From sequence record NC_047815.1: DNA of 64,000 nt, one strand, 5' to 3'. Shown here in pieces: positions 18,041 through 63,763 of this stretch; the first letter of the stretch is position 1; every line of letters begins with the position of its first letter. A program made the translations under genes and the position numbers. Below the pieces are notes generated by a model. That model worked only from the letters and a program-made list of their open reading frames with translations. It made no database searches and was not told the DNA's origin.

Positions 18041-18115
18041 CTACACCCACAACTCTTGTGCTTTAAAGACCTTAGACGTGCTTAGTCTTGGAAACAGTCC
18101 GGGCACCGAAAACTA

Positions 18116-18236
18116 CAAATCTGTGGTCAAAATAATCGCAGAAATCACTAGACAAATCTTTCTCAACCTGATAGACGCGGCAGTCGAAAATCTTTTTTGA
18201 AAAAGTGCTTGCAACATGTGTTCAGCATGATATTAT
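18116..18236 (+). promoter_or_regulatory. sigma70-type promoter with displaced upstream box
   Basis: TTGCAA 18209-14, 16-nt spacer, TGn-TATTAT 18231-36; CAAATCTGTGGTCAAAA at 18116-32. Confidence 0.7.
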
Positions 18237-18324
18237 GCAATCTCAGTAAGACGCAGCGCAGACAACGCAGCGACTTACAAACGCTCTTTAACAATATGAC
18301 TAATCAACTAAGAGAGAAAATCTT

Positions 18325-21918: not shown

Positions 21919-21970
21919 CAAATCACTGGTTAAAATACAGCTAGAACAGATCAGATTAATCTGATACAAT
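21919..21970 (+). promoter_or_regulatory. box-type sigma70 promoter with 16-bp palindrome in spacer
   Basis: CAAATCACTGGTTAAAA 21919-35; TGn-TACAAT 21965-70; ATCAGATTAATCTGAT 21950-65. Confidence 0.75.
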
Positions 21971-50530: not shown

Positions 50531-50715
50531 AAACCGTGAACGAGTTGGTAAAGCAATTAAAGCAGTCCAATTCTATCGTATTAACCGAATCAGTGGCAGA
50601 CAGTGTTCTGCCCGATTTAAAATTCACCCTTGATGTGTTGTGTATGAATTACCGTCTGCGTCAAATCGATACACTCAGCGGAGGGCGCCAGACGAAAATT
50701 GAATTACGCAGTTAA
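50527..50715 (+). CDS. small hypothetical protein
   Basis: ATGA overlap. Confidence 0.65.
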   Translation: MKTVNELVKQLKQSNSIVLTESVADSVLPDLKFTLDVLCMNYRLRQIDTLSGGRQTKIELRS

Positions 50716-50857
50716 CTGAACTACCCTTTGGCCTTACGTTATTTATCCATCCCTCCTGACAGAGGTTGCGTAAGGTCCTTTTTAAAGCGTGTTTTCGAGC
50801 GTGCTTTAAAAAGCTGATAACTAGAAAACTCACCTTCTAGTTGGTACGTGAAAGCTG

Positions 50858-50909
50858 CAAATCTGCGGTCAAAACAGTGCTAGCAACAAGCGAAACGCTG
50901 TGCTACAAT
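50858..50909 (+). promoter_or_regulatory. box-type sigma70 promoter
   Basis: CAAATCTGCGGTCAAAA 50858-74; TAGCAA 50881-86; TGn-TACAAT 50904-09. Confidence 0.8.
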
Positions 50910-50915
50910 ATATGT

Positions 50916-51245
50916 GCAGCATGTCGTGTGCTGTAACATCGAGGAAACTTGCTAGTCTTTGAGTCTCTATCTATATGTGCGGCCATGCACTGATATGAGA
51001 CTCCTTTTTAAAACAGGTTCAATGAGCCTAGTTTAAAAAGCAATTAAAGCCAAGAGACTTCAACCCACTACTTGGTTAGTAACACCTCTGGTGCCAGGTC
51101 GGCGGCTGCATCCCAGAGACTGGGGCCTGGCTCCCTTTTTAAAGCTGATTTTGATTAGTCAGTTTTCGAAAGGGTTCGATACCCTTGAGCGCATTTGGAT
51201 TTACGCGGTTTTCACCAACTGTGCTCTCATATTAAACCGCAAAGG
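50916..51245 (+). ncRNA. candidate structured non-coding RNA / long structured leader
   Basis: ~330 nt with no credible ORF after a strong promoter; at least 7 consecutive hairpins, a T-loop-like arm and a possible pseudoknot. Confidence 0.55.
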
Positions 51246-51253
51246 AAATAACA

Positions 51254-51967
51254 ATGCCTACATTACGCAAACCTCGTCCAGCAGATAAGTTCTCTCAAGC
51301 TCGCGCCGCCAAGAACTCTCCTGAACGTCAAGAAGCAGCCAAGAAGAAAGTGCCACGCGGTCCTAAATCAGCAGGCCCTCGTCGCAATACTGTCCAAGTG
51401 GAACGCGCTGCTACGATACGCGACGAGGACCGTGTTGTAAACCTCGTGCTGTTTATCTTACGTGGTTGGAAACAAGCTAAGGCGGATAGTGAAGCCAGCG
51501 CTGCACAGGGCATCATTAAGGTAAGTCGTCGTGAAATCGAACTAGCTTTACGCGATCTCAAAAACACGCGTTTCACTAAAATCCCGACACTGATTAACGA
51601 TGTGTTGGTCTACAACGAAATCGTAAATGAGTTTGGTCAGTGGGTGTACGTAGAGCATGATAGTCCTGACTGGATGTTCATCTTAACGCCAGATCGTGAA
51701 ACGCTTGTGACACGCTGTCGCATTCGCCGCAATAAAGAGACAGACGACCTGACACAGCTCATATCCTCAGAAGTTCTGTTGAAAGATTGGAGCGAAGAAG
51801 AGGTAGAGATAGACGTCTCAGAAGAAGGCGAGGAGTATCAATCATGGACCCTCAGCCAACTTCAAAACTTTGCTAAAGCCGAAGGTTACATGGGCATCAA
51901 AGATGAAGGATGGAACGATCGTTCAGCACTCATTGCTCGAATCATCAACAAGGGCGCAATCAAATGA
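51254..51967 (+). CDS. protein with basic N-terminus and C-terminal Rho-N/HeH-like helical module
   Basis: AAGGA SD; WTLSQLQNFAKAEG...RSALIARII. Confidence 0.75.
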   Translation: MPTLRKPRPADKFSQARAAKNSPERQEAAKKKVPRGPKSAGPRRNTVQVERAATIRDEDRVVNLVLFILRGWKQAKADSEASAAQGIIKVSRREIELALRDLKNTRFTKIPTLINDVLVYNEIVNEFGQWVYVEHDSPDWMFILTPDRETLVTRCRIRRNKETDDLTQLISSEVLLKDWSEEEVEIDVSEEGEEYQSWTLSQLQNFAKAEGYMGIKDEGWNDRSALIARIINKGAIK

Positions 51968-52293
51968 GTCTGACTATTCGTTCTGCCGCTGAGGCCGCCT
52001 CGATGATCGTAGAAAACGTTACTCTTTACTCTAATGAGAAAGAGTTCGAAACAATACTACCTCGCTTTAAAATGCCAGAGACGGCGATACGTCGAATTTC
52101 AGGACACGCTCGCATAATACCTGAAAGTTATATCGAACAATTGTCTGTAGAAATACAGCAACTCGATTGGATGCTGCTGCGATGTAGTGCAAAAGAATTT
52201 ATCTTTATGCATTGTGATGTACCGTCAAACTGGACGACATTGAGTGCCAAGCGTGTGGCGCCAAATCATAGAGACGACTCAGTAGACGATTAA
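51964..52293 (+). CDS. hypothetical protein
   Basis: ATGA overlap. Confidence 0.65.
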   Translation: MSLTIRSAAEAASMIVENVTLYSNEKEFETILPRFKMPETAIRRISGHARIIPESYIEQLSVEIQQLDWMLLRCSAKEFIFMHCDVPSNWTTLSAKRVAPNHRDDSVDD

Positions 52294-52321
52294 CTCTAAT
52301 TGAGCAAGGACGCATAATCTA

Positions 52322-52373
52322 CAAATAGATGGTCAAAATAGCGGTAGATTTCTACCGCTATTTTTGATACACT
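52322..52373 (+). promoter_or_regulatory. box-type sigma70 promoter overlapped by a 14-bp inverted repeat
   Basis: CAAATAGATGGTCAAAA 52322-38; TGn-TACACT 52368-73; inverted repeat 52335-64. Confidence 0.75.
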
Positions 52374-52380
52374 AGAGATC

Positions 52381-52533
52381 AAGCAGTACATCTTTTTAAA
52401 GTGTTCTAAGTGGGATTAGAGTGCTTTACAAAGAGCAAGACTTTTGACTGTGTGGCGGACTTCTAATGTCCGATGAATACGCGTTCAACGCCACACAGTC
52501 CTTTTTGCAGAGAGCACCATCTAGTGTACTGTG
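52381..52533 (+). ncRNA. candidate small structured RNA
   Basis: No ORF between two tandem promoters; 13-bp and 12-bp stems, U-tract at 52501, ends complementary. Confidence 0.55.
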
Positions 52534-52585
52534 CAAAACAGTGGTCAAAATGACCGTTGCTTTTAACCATGATTTTTCGTACTAT
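52534..52585 (+). promoter_or_regulatory. box-type sigma70 promoter
   Basis: CAAAACAGTGGTCAAAA 52534-50; TTGCTT 52557-62; TACTAT 52580-85. Confidence 0.8.
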
Positions 52586-52647
52586 TATATCTCTTGAGCA
52601 ATAACGCTCAACGCTATATCATCTACTAATACTGAGGAGTATTAATT

Positions 52648-54267
52648 ATGGCACGTCTCGAAACTTCTTCAAACCTGGTTGGCAAATCTATCGTTCTGCT
52701 GAACGGCACCAAAGCTAAAATTGTTGACGCTATCACAAGCGGCTACAAAACTGATAAGAGCGCGAAGCGTATCGCCACTCGCTGCGTTATCAAGAAGGGC
52801 ACTGGTTACGCAGAAATTGAACGTATGCCGCTGACCCAGCTTGTTGACACGGGTGAGGGTTATGTTGAAATCAAATCTGCTGACTCGAAAGCGCCTGCTA
52901 AAAAGACCGCTGCTAAGTCTACAGCAAAAGCATCAACCAAGACCACAACGAAAACTTCCGCCAAAAGCTCAACCAAAGCCGCAGCGAAAGCTGATAGCAA
53001 ACCAGCAGCAAAAGCAAAAGCGCCTGCTAAAACAAAAGCAGCCGCTAAGAAAGAAGAAGCCGAAGCGCCGCGTAGTCGTGTTCGTCGTAAGTCTGCACAG
53101 CCGACTACTTTGACCGCTATTGATCAAGAGTTCACCGAAGCTCTGGTGATGCGTGTTGTTGAGCATTTGAAATCAGGCAATCTGCTGTCACTTGCTACTG
53201 ACGGTGTTACGCCGATTGATAACGCGTTTGAAGTTACTTATGATGCGCAGTATGCAGCGCCGAATCAATTGCAGTTTACTATCGGTGTTGAGTATGCGAT
53301 GCCGCAGCAAGCCGCTGCAAACGATGCAGTAGAAATCAGCGCAGAAGTGCTGGAGCGTGCTGCTAAGAAAGTCGGCAAGACCATCGGCAAGAAACTTGCT
53401 GCTGCTATCAAGTCTGCGTACGGCGTAGACAGTGCGAAAGACCTGCTTGCTGGTACCGTACTGCGTCACGGCGATGATGAATTCATCTATATCGGTGCAA
53501 GTGCTGCCGACGCTGATAAAGCGTATATGTACAACGCCGAGTCTGATAAGTTTCGTGCAGTAGCCGCTGCTAATCTGTCTAGCTATGAGCTGGTGGCTGA
53601 CGAAGAACAAGACGAAGACGAAGAAGAGGAAGAAGAAGACGACAACGCTGACCTCGACTTTGAAGACGACGAAGAAGAAGAGGCTGATGACGAAGAAGCC
53701 GAAGAAGAGGAAGAGGACGAGGAAGAAGAAGCCGAAGAAGAAGAAGACGGCGAAGAATCTGAACCTGAATATTCTTATCGTTCAATCTCGAAAGATGAAT
53801 TGAGCCTCGTCAATAAGAAAGTAACTGCTAAGTATGTGGCGCAACTTGCTGAACAGTGGTCGCTTGATGTTGAAGCTCTGGTGCCTGGTCTGATTGTGTC
53901 AGACGGCGAAACCGAGTTCGCATATGTCGGCTTCGACTCTAAAGGCGGTCTGGTAGTTATCGATACACAAGACGGCGAAGCGATGGTCTACGCTAAAGCA
54001 CAGGTTAAATCGCTGACTGAGTTTGCCGCTGTGTTGGGCGACGACGAGACCTCTGACGAAGAAGCAGAAGAGGAAGAAGTTGAAGACGAAGAAGACGAAG
54101 AAGAAGACGGCGACGATGATTTTGACTTCGATGATGCCGACTCTGCTGACCTCGATGATATGTCAGAAGATGAATTGCGTGATAAAGTGATTCAAGCAGG
54201 TCTGACTACCGTACGCAAAGCTGGTCGCATGAACGAAGATGAATTACGCGAACTGCTGGCTGACTAA
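52648..54267 (+). CDS. modular protein: K/A-rich linker, two beta-rich domains, D/E tracts, C-terminal 40-aa helical module
   Basis: GAGGAG SD; composition and internal repeats visible in translation. Confidence 0.85.
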   Translation: MARLETSSNLVGKSIVLLNGTKAKIVDAITSGYKTDKSAKRIATRCVIKKGTGYAEIERMPLTQLVDTGEGYVEIKSADSKAPAKKTAAKSTAKASTKTTTKTSAKSSTKAAAKADSKPAAKAKAPAKTKAAAKKEEAEAPRSRVRRKSAQPTTLTAIDQEFTEALVMRVVEHLKSGNLLSLATDGVTPIDNAFEVTYDAQYAAPNQLQFTIGVEYAMPQQAAANDAVEISAEVLERAAKKVGKTIGKKLAAAIKSAYGVDSAKDLLAGTVLRHGDDEFIYIGASAADADKAYMYNAESDKFRAVAAANLSSYELVADEEQDEDEEEEEEDDNADLDFEDDEEEEADDEEAEEEEEDEEEEAEEEEDGEESEPEYSYRSISKDELSLVNKKVTAKYVAQLAEQWSLDVEALVPGLIVSDGETEFAYVGFDSKGGLVVIDTQDGEAMVYAKAQVKSLTEFAAVLGDDETSDEEAEEEEVEDEEDEEEDGDDDFDFDDADSADLDDMSEDELRDKVIQAGLTTVRKAGRMNEDELRELLAD

Positions 54268-57544: not shown

Positions 57545-60526
57545 ATGACCGATCAAAACACTAACGGTTCAGCGAAGTCTAGTGCTGAGGAACAACAGCG
57601 CGTGATTGACCAGAACCGTCACAACACAGCGGCAGCCAGTCAAGATAAGACTGCACTGTTTGTTGTGCTTGCCCCAACCAATGCTGACAACGAAGTTAGC
57701 AACGTTGATTGCAAAGGCGATTTCTTTGCGCGGCAGCTTGAAACAAAAGCAATTGACCGTCTGCCTGACATGTTGAGTCATGTTAGTCAGGGTCTGAAAG
57801 CACAGCACTCCGCATACGATTTACTGCTGCCTCAAAACGGCGTGCCTACTTCTATCGATGCGCGTGTGCAATTGAATGAGCAGTACGACGCCAAGATCGT
57901 TCGCTATACTGTAAACGTTTCAAAGTCGGCATTGATGCAACGTCTCAGCATGGCAATCTTCGATGTTGCTGGTGACCGTAACATCTATGACGTAGCAGCA
58001 CAGTACGGTATTCACGCTATTGTCCTCTCAGATGACAAACAAGCTGTAAATGTACTGCGTGAGTTAGAGTCTCAGCTTGTAGCGTCTAAAGCTGACTTTA
58101 ACTCGGTAATCGATATTGATGATGACGCGCTGAATACCGTGCTGATCAATGTCAACACATTGCCTGCTAATCCGAGCGTGCTTATCGAAGGCGTGCGTCG
58201 TACTTTCGCAATTCAAAATGCTAACGGCCAGTTGCTGGCACCGTCTAAAATTGGAGAACAAACTGTGGTAGATAAAAACAATGGTCCTGTAGATCTCGAC
58301 GAAGATAACTTTGAATCCGTTGATCAGGACAACGAGCAGTCCGACGAAGAAGAAGTGGCAACGGGCCGTGCGCTGCTGGGCTATCAAGCTGATAGCCTGA
58401 CTCAAGAGCAAAAGATTGAAGCTCTGACCGCTATCGATTATGATTGTTCCGAGATGGACGAAGAAGCAATCGACGAAGCGTTTTTGGTTGAGCAAGAGAA
58501 GTTCCTCGACAGCGAAGACGAAGACTCAGAAGAAGAATCTGATGAAGAATCAGAAGAAGCCGAAGACTTCGACGCTGCTGGTGAAATCACTGCTATCCTT
58601 GAGCAGTACGGTGATGACCGTGACCAGATCAAACGTCTGGTGCGTGCTGCTGAACTGAAAGTGCTGGTAGCCGATACTGCTGAAACGCTGGCTGCTAAAC
58701 TGATTGCTCATGTTGAAGACATGAACGAAGAACAGTTTGCCGAATTCCTGACTGATCTGATTGCTGCCGTTGAAGGCAAGCCTGTTGACGTTGCGCCGCT
58801 TAACGAGTGGTTCGATGATACCGACTCTACCGACGAAGAAGAAGACGAAGAGTCCGAAGATGAAGATGAGCAGGACGAAGATGAAGACGAAGATGAGCAG
58901 CAATCTGCCATCGACGCTATTACCGACCCGCTTGATTACTTCGACTATGCTGGTGGTGACCTGACTCCTGAACAACGTATCTCTGCGGTTGAAGCGATGG
59001 GTCACTCCACAGAAGGCCTGAACATCATCAAAGTGATGAAGCTGTTTAACCGTCTGAAAGAAGAAGTATCGCCAGAAACTCTGGACGAAGAAGACGAGCA
59101 GGACGCTCTGCAAGTTCAAGCAGACCTCGACGAAGAAGAGGAGATTGCAGACGAGTCAGAAGACGTAGTTAAGGCGCGTGCGTATCTCGCTGCTGCCGCT
59201 GCTGATGACCTGTCTATCATCGCCGAACTGGTTGGTGCAGATGCAACTGACCTCGACGAAGAACAGACTATCGAAGCCGTGTTGTTTGAAGGTGATATTG
59301 ATAATCTGATCGCTGCTGCTGATACGTACGGTGTTGAAGCTGACTCCGATATCTCCTACTGGGAATTGCTGGTGGCGTTCCTGGAAAGCTACTTCTCAGA
59401 AGATGATTCAGAAGAAGCGGACTTCGGACAAGATGAACCTCAGTCTGAAAACGAAAGCATCCTTGCTCAGGCTGGTGTTGAGAACAACTCTAATCCACTG
59501 GGTATCGAAGCTGTGTCTGGCGCCGACAACAGCGGTAGCTTGAAGTTCCTGCGTAATGCACACAACAGCCCAGCAGGTACGCTGATGAGCGTTGATATGC
59601 CGCAGTCGCTGATCATCAACTTCACGCTGACTGACCGTGCATCGTTTGAAGAATTCAACGAAGAACTGCAGGACGTTGACGGCCTGAACTATCGCTTCCC
59701 GTTTGTTCGTCCGAAGAAAGCGAACAAAGCACAAGGCGCGATGTACCAGCCTGCTGCGTCACTGATTGAAATCATGGAGCAGACTGCAACAAGCCGCTTC
59801 ATGGTCGACACTAATCAGTTTGATGTTGGTCAATTCAGCGAAGCACTGAATGCGTCACTGGCCACCAGCGTTGAGAACAACCTGTATGACGGTCTGCTGG
59901 AACCAGGCGCTAACCCGCACGAAGAAGGTCTCAAGCTCGGTGACTTTGTTGATGACGAAGAACTGACCGATGATGAAATCGCTCCTGAGTATTGGGACGA
60001 ATTCCAGGGTGCTGACTTGCCTATGCACGGTATCATCAACGGTTTCGTGGGCGTTCGTCCTGTGCAAATCGAAGAACTGCACAGCGTGTTGTGCCTCGGT
60101 GTGCTGAACGTTGCAGTGCCTGGTATCTGGGAACTGGACCGTAACAAAGTTGGTGAGCTGCTTGATGGCGCAATCAATGCTGTCAAATCTCTGCTGGCAC
60201 CGAACAACAACATCAAAGTACACGTGGGCTTCACTCTGAGTTCTGCCTCTCTGATTGTTGATGATACGCTGATGCATGTTGTTAATCATCTGCGTGATCA
60301 GGAAATGCTGTACAGCTACTCCTCTGCCGACTGTGCGTTGTTCGCAGACAACGAAGACGTGCTGGAAGCCGCTGCAAGTCTCGACAACAGCGAACGTCTG
60401 CCGCTTGAACTGCTGTCTACTGGCTTCGCTGGCAAGACGTTTGAAAACGGCGGTGACCTGACTATTCTGGTTCCTTGCTTTGAAATCGACGCTGACGAAG
60501 ACGAAGACGAAGCAGACGAAGAATAA
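57545..60526 (+). CDS. 993-aa highly acidic modular protein
   Basis: GAGGAG SD; short helical modules separated by D/E tracts. Confidence 0.85.
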   Translation: MTDQNTNGSAKSSAEEQQRVIDQNRHNTAAASQDKTALFVVLAPTNADNEVSNVDCKGDFFARQLETKAIDRLPDMLSHVSQGLKAQHSAYDLLLPQNGVPTSIDARVQLNEQYDAKIVRYTVNVSKSALMQRLSMAIFDVAGDRNIYDVAAQYGIHAIVLSDDKQAVNVLRELESQLVASKADFNSVIDIDDDALNTVLINVNTLPANPSVLIEGVRRTFAIQNANGQLLAPSKIGEQTVVDKNNGPVDLDEDNFESVDQDNEQSDEEEVATGRALLGYQADSLTQEQKIEALTAIDYDCSEMDEEAIDEAFLVEQEKFLDSEDEDSEEESDEESEEAEDFDAAGEITAILEQYGDDRDQIKRLVRAAELKVLVADTAETLAAKLIAHVEDMNEEQFAEFLTDLIAAVEGKPVDVAPLNEWFDDTDSTDEEEDEESEDEDEQDEDEDEDEQQSAIDAITDPLDYFDYAGGDLTPEQRISAVEAMGHSTEGLNIIKVMKLFNRLKEEVSPETLDEEDEQDALQVQADLDEEEEIADESEDVVKARAYLAAAAADDLSIIAELVGADATDLDEEQTIEAVLFEGDIDNLIAAADTYGVEADSDISYWELLVAFLESYFSEDDSEEADFGQDEPQSENESILAQAGVENNSNPLGIEAVSGADNSGSLKFLRNAHNSPAGTLMSVDMPQSLIINFTLTDRASFEEFNEELQDVDGLNYRFPFVRPKKANKAQGAMYQPAASLIEIMEQTATSRFMVDTNQFDVGQFSEALNASLATSVENNLYDGLLEPGANPHEEGLKLGDFVDDEELTDDEIAPEYWDEFQGADLPMHGIINGFVGVRPVQIEELHSVLCLGVLNVAVPGIWELDRNKVGELLDGAINAVKSLLAPNNNIKVHVGFTLSSASLIVDDTLMHVVNHLRDQEMLYSYSSADCALFADNEDVLEAAASLDNSERLPLELLSTGFAGKTFENGGDLTILVPCFEIDADEDEDEADEE

Positions 60527-60540
60527 AATCTGTTAATGTA

Positions 60541-60567
60541 GGGCGTAGCGCAACTGCGCCCTCATTT
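60541..60567 (+). terminator. stem-loop / probable terminator
   Basis: GGGCGTAG/CTGCGCCC stem, weak U-tract. Confidence 0.5.
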
Positions 60568-60579
60568 CTGGAGATTGTA

Positions 60580-61464
60580 ATGTCAGAACACAACAGCACT
60601 GAACAGCAAGACAGCGGTATGATGTTGCGTGACCACATCGTATCCCTTGAGCAGCGTGTTCGTAATCTGAGTGGTCAAGTGCAGGACTTATCTGCCGAGC
60701 TTGCTCAAACCTCTACGAACCACACCAACAAAAGCATTGAGTGCCGTCGCCTGACTCGTGTGTTAGCTGAACGTGATGCGCAACTGCAAGCAGCAACAGA
60801 CCTTGCCTCAGAACGTAAAACAGCACTTGAGCAAATGATTTCAGTCGGTGAAGCTCAACGGAAACTACGTGAGACGGAATCTCGCACTGCTGAAAAGCGT
60901 TACAATGAACTGCGTAACCAGCTTGCTAAGCCTGCTGGAAATCAGAAATTTGTTATGAACATGATAATTAACGCTGCACTGAACGAACTCCGTTGTGGTG
61001 TTGAGCGTGCGTTGTTCATGTACAGCACAGCAAATCCACGCAAGACCAATCGGCATCGTGCTGCCGAACAAGCACTGCGTGAGCAATTAACTTTGGAAGA
61101 CGTTCCAAGTTCTTTGCAGGATATTGTAAAAGTATACTGCGTTACAACAAACACGGCGTTTGATATTGATTCAGTCCTCAGCGAACTTAGCGCCCATGTG
61201 ATGTTGTGCCGAGAGACGATTGAAGACAGCGATACGGCGTCCGGCATGTTCAATCAAATGTCAAGCACGATAGTCGCACAGCGTGCCTTGCTTGAGCAAG
61301 ACGTAGCATCCGAACCTGACGACATTCTGTTTACGTTTATGTATGACGTAATCAACGATGACGAAAAGCCTTACGGCGATTCGCTGATTGATGCAGTAAC
61401 AAAATTGTGTGTACGTTACGCACAGCAATTAAGTTTCGAACTTCCAGTTTTATCTGACGAATAA
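60580..61464 (+). CDS. coiled-coil protein
   Basis: GGAG SD; heptad-rich N-terminal ~120 aa. Confidence 0.75.
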   Translation: MSEHNSTEQQDSGMMLRDHIVSLEQRVRNLSGQVQDLSAELAQTSTNHTNKSIECRRLTRVLAERDAQLQAATDLASERKTALEQMISVGEAQRKLRETESRTAEKRYNELRNQLAKPAGNQKFVMNMIINAALNELRCGVERALFMYSTANPRKTNRHRAAEQALREQLTLEDVPSSLQDIVKVYCVTTNTAFDIDSVLSELSAHVMLCRETIEDSDTASGMFNQMSSTIVAQRALLEQDVASEPDDILFTFMYDVINDDEKPYGDSLIDAVTKLCVRYAQQLSFELPVLSDE

Positions 61465-61476
61465 AAAATCAGAATA

Positions 61477-61486
61477 AATCTGTAAA
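61477..61486 (+). promoter_or_regulatory. AATCTGTAAA box
   Basis: Intergenic perfect copy. Confidence 0.6.
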
Positions 61487-61544
61487 TTGTAATTGAACCA
61501 CACACGGTAATTGTACCGCGACTATTAATCATCTGGAGTTTTAA

Positions 61545-62114
61545 ATGGCAAAGTCCACTAGCACTGCACTGGTAGCACCGACTCGTATCAACCGCATTTC
61601 TAAAAAGAGCGGTTCTATTTCACAGTCTGCTGCTAAAGCGTCTCAGATGCCGCACGATGTAACTATCACCGCTACTCAGGTTTACGATGTTCAGGGTTTC
61701 ATCACTGAACTGACTGCTGACAGCGTAACTATTCGTCACAAACGTGGCTTCGGTTCAAGCGCCCAGGTTCTGTCAACGTTCCCACGCAGTCAAGTTATCG
61801 AGCTGGTGGGTGATACCGGTACTTTCGGTAGCCTGAGTGTTCTGGGCAACGTGCCTGTTCGTACTCTGAAAGGTCAGTTGCTGTCGTTTAAGGGTACTCA
61901 AGTCATTGCTACTGACTTCGATACCAAAGAAGTTACCGTGCTGAACACAACCGTGCCTGGCGTGTCTATCACTTACGCTGTGAACGAAACTGCCGCTGCT
62001 AAAAAGTATGGCATTGCTGCTCCGACCAAAGGCAAGAAAGCTGACGCGAAAGCAGCGCCTGCTAAAGCTGCTAAAGGCGGTAAGCCAGTCAAGGCTGGTA
62101 AATCAAAAAAGTAA
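61545..62114 (+). CDS. basic protein with beta-rich core and K/A tail
   Basis: GGAG SD; ends TCA AAA AAG TAA. Confidence 0.8.
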   Translation: MAKSTSTALVAPTRINRISKKSGSISQSAAKASQMPHDVTITATQVYDVQGFITELTADSVTIRHKRGFGSSAQVLSTFPRSQVIELVGDTGTFGSLSVLGNVPVRTLKGQLLSFKGTQVIATDFDTKEVTVLNTTVPGVSITYAVNETAAAKKYGIAAPTKGKKADAKAAPAKAAKGGKPVKAGKSKK

Positions 62115-62141
62115 GTTCTGACGAAGATTTTTAATCGTCAG
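62105..62141 (+). other. candidate -1 programmed frameshift signal
   Basis: A AAA AAG heptamer, 6-nt spacer, CTGACGA/TCGTCAG hairpin. Confidence 0.5.
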
Positions 62142-62143
62142 TA

Positions 62144-62210
62144 AATCTGTAAAGTGTATTCGTCAAGGGCGTTGTTGTTTTAACAGCGTCCTCAAAAACA
62201 AATCTGTAAA
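62144..62210 (+). promoter_or_regulatory. two AATCTGTAAA boxes
   Basis: Perfect copies at 62144 and 62201, upstream of 62256. Confidence 0.6.
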
Positions 62211-62255
62211 CTTTATTCGAATCAAGTCGATTCTACTCAATAGGAAAAAGTTATC

Positions 62256-63047
62256 ATGGCAAAAGCTAAAGCAAATACCGCAACTATCGTTCTGGCAAAA
62301 ATCCTGGGTGTGTTCGTTGAGAACGCAAGCGACAAAGAAATCGCTGCTGCCCTGGCCGAAGCCGGTCTGACTGTTTCTGGTGGCAAAGTCGTTAAAGCTG
62401 ACAAAGCTGCCAAAGGCGGTAAAGGCAAAAAAGCTAAAGTGGCAACTGTTGAACAAATCGTTGCGGCTGTGAAAGAAGAAGAAGCAATCGACCTGACTGG
62501 CGTAAGCGAAGATGATCTGCGTGCTGCCGTTGTTAAGGCCAAGCTGTCTGCTGCTAAGAAAGCCAAAGCGCTGGACGAAGAAGCTCTGCTGGAGCTGCTG
62601 AACGAAGCGATGGGCGTCGAGTCTGACGAAGAAGAAGACGAAGACGACGAAGAAGACGAAGACGAAGAAGACGAGGACGAAGAAGAAGAAGAAGAAGACG
62701 ACTCGGACGATGAAGACGAAGACGAAGACGAAGACGAAGACGAAGACGAAGACGAAGACGACGAAGATGAAGATGAAGATGAGGACGAAGATGAAGATGA
62801 AGATGAGGACGAAGATGAACTCGACCTCGCTAATCTCGACGAAGACGAACTTCGCGCTCTGGTAATCGAACATAAACTGGCGCCTAAGAAAAAGGCTGCT
62901 AAGATGGACGAAGACGAACTTCGTGAACTGTGTGAAGCTCACTTCGGCGATGACGAAGATGAGGACGAAGAAGACGAAGACGAAGACGAGGACGAAGATG
63001 AAGACGAAGACTTCGACGATGAAGACGAAGACGAAGACGACGAATAA
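62256..63047 (+). CDS. extremely acidic protein with two 40-aa helical modules
   Basis: AGGA SD; ~65-residue near-pure D/E tract plus D/E tail. Confidence 0.85.
   Translation: MAKAKANTATIVLAKILGVFVENASDKEIAAALAEAGLTVSGGKVVKADKAAKGGKGKKAKVATVEQIVAAVKEEEAIDLTGVSEDDLRAAVVKAKLSAAKKAKALDEEALLELLNEAMGVESDEEEDEDDEEDEDEEDEDEEEEEEDDSDDEDEDEDEDEDEDEDEDDEDEDEDEDEDEDEDEDEDELDLANLDEDELRALVIEHKLAPKKKAAKMDEDELRELCEAHFGDDEDEDEEDEDEDEDEDEDEDFDDEDEDEDDE
62712..62759 (+). repeat. (GAAGAC)8 perfect tandem repeat encoding (ED)n
   Basis: Eight exact hexamers. Confidence 0.9.
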
Positions 63048-63241
63048 TAGCATCTAACGTGCTGCACTTCTGTAACTCTTAATCTGAGTCGCACAGAAAA
63101 AAGTTTGAAATTTCCTCGATAAAACTTGTAGACGTATGTTGAGAATGATAATGTACGTCTACAGGAAATCGAAACCCTGAACACTTTTGTTTTTAACTCG
63201 CGCACCACATACAGCGCAAATCAAAAATTCTGGAGAAGAAT

Positions 63242-63763
63242 ATGTCTAAGAAAGTTATCGCCGGTCTGAACAAAAACCTGAAAGCAATCGCTAAATCAGA
63301 AGCTGCCCTGACCAAAACTGTTAACGCCACCAGCAAAGAAATCGAAAACCTGGGCGCACAGCGTGCCGGTATCGAAGCGCAGATCGCTGAACTGTCTGGT
63401 GTTGCTGCTCCGGCTAAAGCGCCGAAAGCGCCGAAAGCTGCGAAAGCTGAGAAGCCTGCAAAAGCTGGTAAGAAAGAAAAAGCTGCTAAAGCTGAAAAGC
63501 CAGCTAAAGTGAAAAAAGAAAAAGCTGCTAAAGCTGAGAAACCTGCCAAGGCCGGTAAAGCTGCTAAAGCAGAAAAAGCTGCTAAGCCTGCTAAAGCAGA
63601 AAAAGCTGGCAAGAAAGTGAAAGCCGAAACCAAACCAGCTAAAGCTGACAAAGCTGCTAAAGGCAAAAAAGCTGACAAAGCTGCTAAGCCTGCTAAAGCC
63701 GGTAAAGCTGGTAAGAAAGCGAAAGCATCTGCTGACGAAGATTTCGATTTCGAAGTAGCATAA
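63242..63763 (+). CDS. histone H1/AlgP-like K/A/P-rich DNA-binding protein
   Basis: N-terminal coiled coil, KAAK/AEKPAK repeats, acidic-aromatic tip DEDFDFEVA. Confidence 0.75.
   Translation: MSKKVIAGLNKNLKAIAKSEAALTKTVNATSKEIENLGAQRAGIEAQIAELSGVAAPAKAPKAPKAAKAEKPAKAGKKEKAAKAEKPAKVKKEKAAKAEKPAKAGKAAKAEKAAKPAKAEKAGKKVKAETKPAKADKAAKGKKADKAAKPAKAGKAGKKAKASADEDFDFEVA

Follow-up and report, generated by a model that had tools for sequence, protein, structure and literature searches.

The interval between positions 52381 and 52533 of the window, which an earlier note had taken for a small RNA gene, was found to be made up of parts that recur solely at this locus and would constitute transcription punctuation. 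It is somewhat probable from its sequence that the interval forms a promoter-coupled terminator together with an attenuator-type leader or insulator 5' of the promoter P2 and the gene gp314, and is not a free-standing RNA gene. The window, i.e. the whole stretch of 64,000 nt that was analysed, corresponds to record positions 186001-250000 of Erwinia phage vB_EamM_Yoloswag (NC_047815.1; 100% identity), and a window position equals the record position minus 186000. The interval sits in a 354-nt gap between the stop codon of gp313 (52293) and the ATG of gp314 (52648). The following features were located in and around this gap:

51964 to 52293, plus strand: gp313 (from the annotation), 109 aa, the final gene of the upstream gp312-gp313 unit
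52322 to 52373, plus strand: predicted promoter P1, with CAAAT at 52322-26, TGGTCAAAAT at 52330-39, a -35-like TAGATT at 52345-50 and the -10 TACACT at 52368-73
52336 to 52365, plus strand: terminator-type hairpin embedded in P1 (fold z -4.61)
52392 to 52433, plus strand: hairpin hp1, with a 13-bp core (52397-409/52416-428) and a base in which the U-run CUUUUU is paired with CAAAG
52446 to 52506, plus strand: T, an element of the intrinsic-terminator type, with a 12-bp stem (52446-57/52489-500), a 31-nt loop and C plus U5 at 52501-06
52503 to 52538, plus strand: hairpin hp2, a looser fifth member of the hp family, in which UUUUGCA (the U-run of T) pairs with UGCAAAA (the upstream element of P2)
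52534 to 52585, plus strand: predicted promoter P2, the second motif copy, with TGGTCAAAAT at 52542-51 and the -10 TACTAT at 52580-85
52594 to 52611, plus strand: 5' hairpin of the predicted P2 transcript, UUGAGC-AAUAAC-GCUCAA
52627 to 52647, plus strand: Shine-Dalgarno (SD) hairpin of gp314, with a 7-bp stem (52627-33/52638-44), the SD GAGG in its loop and the ATG at 52648
52648 to 54267, plus strand: gp314, 539 aa, whose conserved N-terminal domain is accompanied by a basic tract rich in K and A and by a long acidic tract

Yoloswag, whose host is the fire-blight bacterium E. amylovora, is a member of the PaBG/'Lupandier' group of jumbo phages, for which a sigma70-like phage factor is reported (PMC7412058); the passages of that article describing the factor do not mention a phage RNA polymerase with it. 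On this partial account, host-type promoters and intrinsic terminators were taken to be the relevant signals. The genes around the interval belong only to families of unknown function in PHROGs (gp312, gp313 and gp314; PHROG 26231 in the case of gp313), and nothing usable was returned for them by Pfam, a PDB sequence search or the ESM Atlas. No N- or Q-like protein, RNA-binding protein or antiterminator candidate was found among gp312-gp314 with these four resources. A scan of IMG/VR confirmed no relatives of gp314, though a later pattern scan showed that this collection contains phages of the group. The sequencing runs containing the stretch were DNA metagenomes only, with no RNA run among the matches listed; their contigs are nearly identical to Yoloswag and are therefore uninformative for covariation. 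It was also observed that gp314 and several downstream ORFs (52648-54267 and 58300-63750) contain basic tracts rich in lysine and alanine together with very long tracts rich in Asp/Glu, and that these dominate the direct-repeat output.

The sequences of both predicted promoters follow a 52-nt motif, CAAAW-N3-TGGTCAAAAT-N26-GATAcTAT, starting at 52322 and 52534, respectively. Its core is sigma70-like (TTG or TAG located 17 bp 5' of a TAnnnT hexamer) and is accompanied by a strictly conserved upstream box. Copies were located by regular-expression and position-weight scans. The latter yielded 12 copies in the 259.7-kb genome, all on the plus strand and all at record positions 204-251 kb; in window coordinates they span 18110-52585, plus a copy at record position 250968. 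P1 was the highest-scoring of the 12 (66.5 bits, by a matrix trained on the family itself with P1 in the training set). A gene begins about 40-350 nt downstream of each of the other 11 copies, and P1 is the sole one followed by another promoter. Tandem promoter motifs with no ORF between them, as proposed earlier, were indeed found: both belong to the strand-specific 12-copy motif, and no gene separates them. Motifs of the P2 type, in genus-specific variants, lie 5' of the gp314 homologue in the relatives examined (Erwinia, Dickeya and Yersinia phages), and P2 is the conserved predicted promoter of gp314. The 5' hairpin of its transcript has an altered yet complementary stem in relatives (GACGC/GCGTC, CGGC/GCCG). 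Likewise, the stem of the gp314 SD hairpin differs in sequence in Yersinia phage fHe-Yen9-02 and Dickeya phage JA29 and keeps its pairing. By eye, a short stem-loop around a GCA motif was seen about 25 nt or less 3' of most full promoter copies printed. A promoter of a type other than the 52-nt family was noticed at 18190-18245, just after a partial motif copy at 18110, where TCTTTTTTGAAAAAG is followed by the near-consensus sigma70 sequence TTGCAA-N16-TATTAT.

The spacer of P1 contains a perfect core stem, AGCGGTAGA/TCTACCGCT at 52340-48/52351-59, followed by ATTTTT (T-tract 52361-65) and then by the -10 hexamer. Promoter-coupled terminators have been described in bacterial chromosomes (Fletcher et al. 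2026 preprint, 10.64898/2026.08.19.745784). As in these, the stem-loop DNA of P1 covers the -35 region, the T-tract lies directly 5' of the -10, and one element would both end the upstream unit and start the next. Unlike them, the predicted promoter P1 carries the strictly conserved upstream box CAAAT-N3-TGGTCAAAAT and belongs to a phage-specific family of 12 copies. A stem-loop and T-tract that overlap or abut the promoter hexamers thus suggest that P1 may be a promoter-coupled terminator for the gp312-gp313 transcripts. The sole difference seen here in a metagenome contig that is nearly the same as Yoloswag (run X2) is AA in place of TT at 52349-52350, in the loop of this hairpin, with the stem unchanged.

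Transcription from P1 is predicted to start at about 52380-81. The minimum free energy (MFE) of 52381-52533 on the plus strand was -55.5 kcal/mol (z -5.26), a value reached by none of 200 shuffles, and the opposite strand gave z -3.35. An RNA ending at the U-run (52381-52506) would fold into the same two domains, with about -42 kcal/mol and z -3.98. The T element itself gave -27.1 kcal/mol (z -4.35). The 12-bp perfect stem followed by CTTTTT that had been noted before was present, and its 12 pairs are all kept in both pEa_SNUABM_5 and the metagenomic relative L013, four of them with compensatory changes; the U-run is kept as well. The combination of stem, U-tract and compensatory pairing is that of an intrinsic (Rho-independent) terminator, as which T is predicted to act. 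In Yoloswag the stem encloses two small hairpins, so the three-way junction proposed in the earlier note does appear in the MFE fold, but both inner hairpins are missing in pEa_SNUABM_5 and L013 and the junction is therefore peculiar to Yoloswag. All three phages retain AUGUCCGAUGA..ACGCG in the loop. Stems similar to T in Alexandraviruses also covary (GACCGTGTG/CACACGGTC, GACCATGTG/CACATGGTC and GACTGTGAG/CTCACAGTC). The large loops of these terminators (15-31 nt) could affect termination efficiency in either direction.

A helix closing the whole interval, between CAGTACAT (52384-91) and GTGTACTG (52524-31), had also been proposed. The two arms are complementary and pair in the MFE fold, but the 3' arm belongs to hp2 and the helix is not conserved. 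A flank-to-flank helix of at least 8 bp occurred in 248 of 5000 shuffles, and the 3' arm lies beyond the terminator. Other demands act on both arms: GCAGTACAT, the initial transcribed sequence, is also found 3' of the promoter at 21919, and CTGTGCAAAA is the upstream box of P2. The pairing is thus better explained by hp2, which contains GTGTACTG and whose 3' strand is the GCAAAA box of P2. For the hp2 hairpin, fold z values of -3.1, -3.2 and -5.7 were obtained in Yoloswag, pEa_SNUABM_5 and L013, respectively.

The GU-rich 13-bp hairpin described before at 52397-428 was likewise present in the MFE fold, with three G.U pairs in its core, and proved to be a member of a covarying family. Its general form is CUUUUU-AAAG-stem-loop-stem-CUUU-AAAAAG. 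A pattern search of the 259.7-kb genome yielded four hp1-like elements, all on the plus strand and all within 1.7 kb (50778 to 52433). An alignment (A4) of twelve copies from four genera had 94.3% of its cells paired and five pairs with compensatory change. The covariation score was 0.381, against 0.187 in shuffles (none of 500 as high) and at most 0.092 when the partners were slid. All three positions with a wobble majority are G.U on the plus strand, and the minus strand folds more weakly; the hairpins therefore appear to work as plus-strand RNA. Every hp begins right 3' of a large-loop stem and takes in the U-run of that stem, so it can be present solely in RNA that reads through the stem. 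No conserved loop or boxA-like sequence, as expected of processive antitermination RNAs (lambda nut, HK022 put), was found in the hp loops; across the copies only the A/U-rich base and a UG/GU step are conserved.

Upstream, the gap between gp310 and gp312 holds a sister array of the same parts:

50730 to 51253, plus strand: the whole array of terminator/hp modules, promoter and leader
50730 to 50813, plus strand: first module, terminator and hp
50858 to 50909, plus strand: predicted promoter, after the first module
50961 to 51040, plus strand: second module, terminator and hp
51104 to 51174, plus strand: third module, terminator and hp

The leader of gp312 (ATG at 51254) that would start from the promoter at 50858 thus comprises two terminator and hp modules and then about 85 nt of sequence that four genera share with high conservation. 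The latter (51173-51253, GGGTTCGATACCC...GGATTTACGCGGTTTTCACC...TAAACCGCAAAGGA) is nearly identical between Yoloswag and pEa_SNUABM_5, recognisable in pEa_SNUABM_23 and pEa_SNUABM_35, and truncated in phB78. In it, GCGGUUU can pair with AAACCGC just 5' of the SD, which suggests translational control. The annotated gp311 (51091-51288, GTG start, 65 aa) overlaps both the third module and this conserved non-coding leader, and is probably not a gene. A more elaborate proposal is that hp is a new cis-acting phage RNA motif, its base re-pairing an upstream terminator U-tract with a downstream A-tract, and that the P1 RNA, carrying hp1 and no gene, is a decoy titrating a factor (RNase III or a phage protein) that acts on the three hp copies of the gp312 leader, thereby tying gp312-gp313 expression to P1 activity. 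We consider this speculative and quite improbable.

Both pEa_SNUABM_5 (genus Rivsvirus) and L013 align with Yoloswag from hp1 onward and retain hp1, T and hp2, without P1. No convincing diverged P1 was found in pEa_SNUABM_5 by eye, by the position-weight matrix or by a sigma70 scan. The place of P1 is taken there by another big-loop terminator, T', whose 3' part aligns with the -10 region of P1 (GATACAGAG... vs GATACACTAGAG...); L013 also has a further big-loop terminator at this place. The difference reflects either a gain of P1 on the Yoloswag branch or its loss on the Rivsvirus branch, a direction for an outgroup to set. In Alexandraviruses, the promoter/terminator/hp unit forms the 5' leader of the homologue of gp312. 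The series of promoter, 5' hairpin, T, hp and leader runs directly into this gene in pEa_SNUABM_35 and pEa_SNUABM_23, where no canonical promoter motif scored between the leader and the gene and no sigma70-like site was seen there by eye. Since leader units with internal terminators run into gp312, terminators inside leaders are normal in this phage group and must be read through. In Y3 and phB78, the counterparts of the gp312 promoter and leader of pEa_SNUABM_35 and pEa_SNUABM_23 are the 'orphan' promoter/terminator/hp units found 5' of the gp314 homologue. P1, hp1 and T are hence not kept as one unit: P1 is missing from pEa_SNUABM_5 and L013, and the units of other genera are non-homologous and correspond to the gp312 leader.

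These results bear on the possibility that the stretch from P1 to T constitutes a dedicated gene encoding a trans-acting sRNA of about 126 nt, working by base pairing through the T loop or as a protein decoy through hp1. Consistent with such a gene, a strong P1 copy lies directly upstream, no ORF is present, the terminator ends in U5 and the RNA folds stably; the AUGUCCGAUGA..ACGCG loop is kept in three phages despite four changed stem pairs, as a base-pairing seed would be, and in Y3, phB78 and Salmondviruses, too, orphan units running from a promoter to a terminator occur 5' of the gp314 homologue. However, the only relatives sharing hp1 and T are without P1, the orphan units of Y3 and phB78 represent the leader of gp312, a gene that these phages lack, and the intervening sequences, hp aside, are non-homologous between genera. 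Target prediction, which had been suggested with the claim, gave 24 matches to the complement of the T-loop AUGUCCGAUGA within the window vs 17.9 expected, which is at chance level. The Rfam search suggested likewise matched no family at the gathering score over the whole window, and at E<=5 on 50600-52750 it returned two chance-level matches only (best E-values 3.3 and 4). A dedicated sRNA gene is thus decidedly unlikely. What stands of the 125-150-nt independently transcribed sRNA of the earlier note is the prediction of a terminated RNA of about 126 nt, but its 'dedicated' nature found no support, the nearest relatives being without P1 and hp1 being one of a family.

Alternatively, P1 could be a by-product of promoter-cassette shuffling of the kind described for PeSL (see below), in which a tandem array of terminators already in place after gp313 received a copy of the 52-nt motif by recombination; the resulting short RNA would then be transcriptional noise and P1 a redundant extra promoter of gp314. 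The gp312 locus is hyperplastic and cassette-like. By comparison of flanking proteins, Yoloswag, pEa_SNUABM_5, pEa_SNUABM_35 and pEa_SNUABM_23 have the gp312 homologue, and Y3 and phB78 lack it. The gp312 breakpoints adjoin the promoter motif (L003 911-1567, L008 929-1501, L005 397-1524 and L012 255-1501). In pEa_SNUABM_28 (L006), a 48-aa fragment homologous to the gp312 homologues of pEa_SNUABM_35 and pEa_SNUABM_23 was noticed 3' of the gp313 homologue. Shuffling would account for T' of pEa_SNUABM_5 lying exactly at the place of P1 with its 3' part aligned, and for the variable presence of gp312 with breakpoints next to the motif; it has a precedent in the PeSL of T4-like phages (PMC4122927). 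Against it, P1 is intact and the best-scoring copy, near-identical Yoloswag-like metagenome DNA retains P1, and an outgroup would be needed to tell a gain in Yoloswag from a loss in pEa_SNUABM_5. We consider this explanation possible, if on the unlikely side. The top score of P1 in Yoloswag also speaks against the preferred leader reading, being odd for a functionless duplicate.

Two further explanations were weighed. An orphan promoter might prime DNA replication at a transcript-primed, R-loop-type origin. The T4 ori(uvsY) and the T7 primary origin are transcript-primed, and the analogy is with an orphan promoter lacking an ORF and with tandem promoters. The GC-skew profile is, however, featureless, with no inflection near 52.4 kb, the conserved features are plus-strand RNA helices with G.U pairs and not an AT-rich unwinding element, and a terminator lies directly downstream, which makes an origin at this site very improbable. 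Equally, the interval could encode a small protein, given that ORFs of 35-43 aa are present, among them a minus-strand ORF. The sole plus-strand ORF (52466-52597, 43 aa) shares its first four codons, MSD(E/D), with pEa_SNUABM_5 and L013. It has no SD, however, lies in the loop of the 12-bp stem and runs across P2, a 4-nt indel breaks its frame, and in L013 it is shortened to 13 aa by a stop. No credible ORF for a small protein was found in 52381-52533. With no SD, a lost frame and substitutions that compensate RNA pairing, this reading was rejected, and its probability is close to nil.

Under the preferred reading of a promoter-coupled terminator with an attenuator-type leader, P1 would be a sigma70-type phage promoter whose spacer terminator halts transcripts from gp312-gp313 before transcription restarts. 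Transcripts from P1 would begin near 52381, form hp1 first and next reach T, and those stopping there would give an RNA of about 126 nt as a terminated by-product. Such a discrete RNA is expected because a covariation-supported stem and a U-run lie 126 nt 3' of the predicted start. In transcripts that read through, hp2 would form by re-pairing of the U-run of T with the A-tract of P2, and the RNA would continue into gp314 as a long-leader mRNA, beside the transcripts started at P2. The expression of gp314 would thus come from P2, plus any read-through from P1, and T would serve as an attenuator and as an insulator separating the upstream unit from gp314. In this reading, the motifs, structures, covariation, synteny and restriction to the locus are observed, and promoter activity, partial termination and what hp does are inferred. 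The hp elements would act in cis on the read-through RNA. Their most likely role, although this is conjecture, would be the masking of a single-stranded U-tract or the provision of a processing or stability site.

Several known systems resemble this arrangement in part. At lambda PR'-tR' (6S transcript), a promoter is followed by an intrinsic terminator before the genes; the short RNA is the default and expression needs read-through. The Yoloswag locus likewise has an intrinsic terminator about 130-200 nt or less after the promoter and ahead of genes, but neither an antiterminator nor a QBE, nut or put element was identified in it, the hp loops are not conserved and gp314 has its own promoter P2. 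The early promoters A1/A2/A3 of phage T7 are tandem and strong, with no ORF between them and RNase III sites downstream. The resemblance lies in tandem promoters about 125-210 nt apart without an ORF, followed by structured RNA before the first gene, whereas T7 lacks terminators between the promoters; cleavage of hp by RNase III would be a hypothesis here. The lambda oop, P22 sar, P1 c4 and P4 CI RNAs each have a defined target, to which they are antisense or with which they pair, and are conserved as units. The predicted P1 RNA is like them in size (about 80-130 nt), in having a promoter and an intrinsic terminator, and in its stable hairpin structure; unlike them, it has T-loop complements at chance level in the window and comes from a unit that is not conserved. 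PeSL cassettes of T4-like phages (PMC2839356, PMC4122927) combine a repeated stem-loop and a sigma70-like promoter amid small unknown genes, with gene presence or absence between relatives and tandem copies with little between them. Similarly, in Yoloswag a repeated motif of 12 copies was found flanking variable genes, as with the gp312 cassette. In contrast to PeSL, the phage group is unrelated (the 'Lupandier' jumbo phages, PMC7412058) and the consensus is another, the recombination is putative, and the stem-loop lies inside the promoter spacer, in some copies only.

The locus provides as handles a 52-nt promoter family in one 47-kb stretch, promoters that are predicted to double as terminators, and a covarying hairpin. 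Because hp always lies beyond a terminator U-run, programmed read-through is implied. We know of no published transcription map for the PaBG/'Lupandier' jumbo phages. If confirmed, the arrangement would show how expression is graded along a co-directional early-gene array in such phages and would add an uncatalogued RNA motif. As the interval is weak as a trans-acting sRNA candidate, it is of use chiefly for annotation and for designing targeted mapping. A scan of IMG/VR for hp flanks recovered the Alexandravirus copies. It was also observed that, in three IMG/VR contigs apparently unrelated to the phage group, a terminator hairpin followed by CTTTTTAAAG-hairpin-CTTTAAAAAG lies between co-directional genes (L029:1528-1664, L033:4650-4785 and L045:3615-3750). 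In these contigs the strand of the genes gives the more stable hairpin, AAG comes next in all three, and the hp motif may therefore be more widespread.
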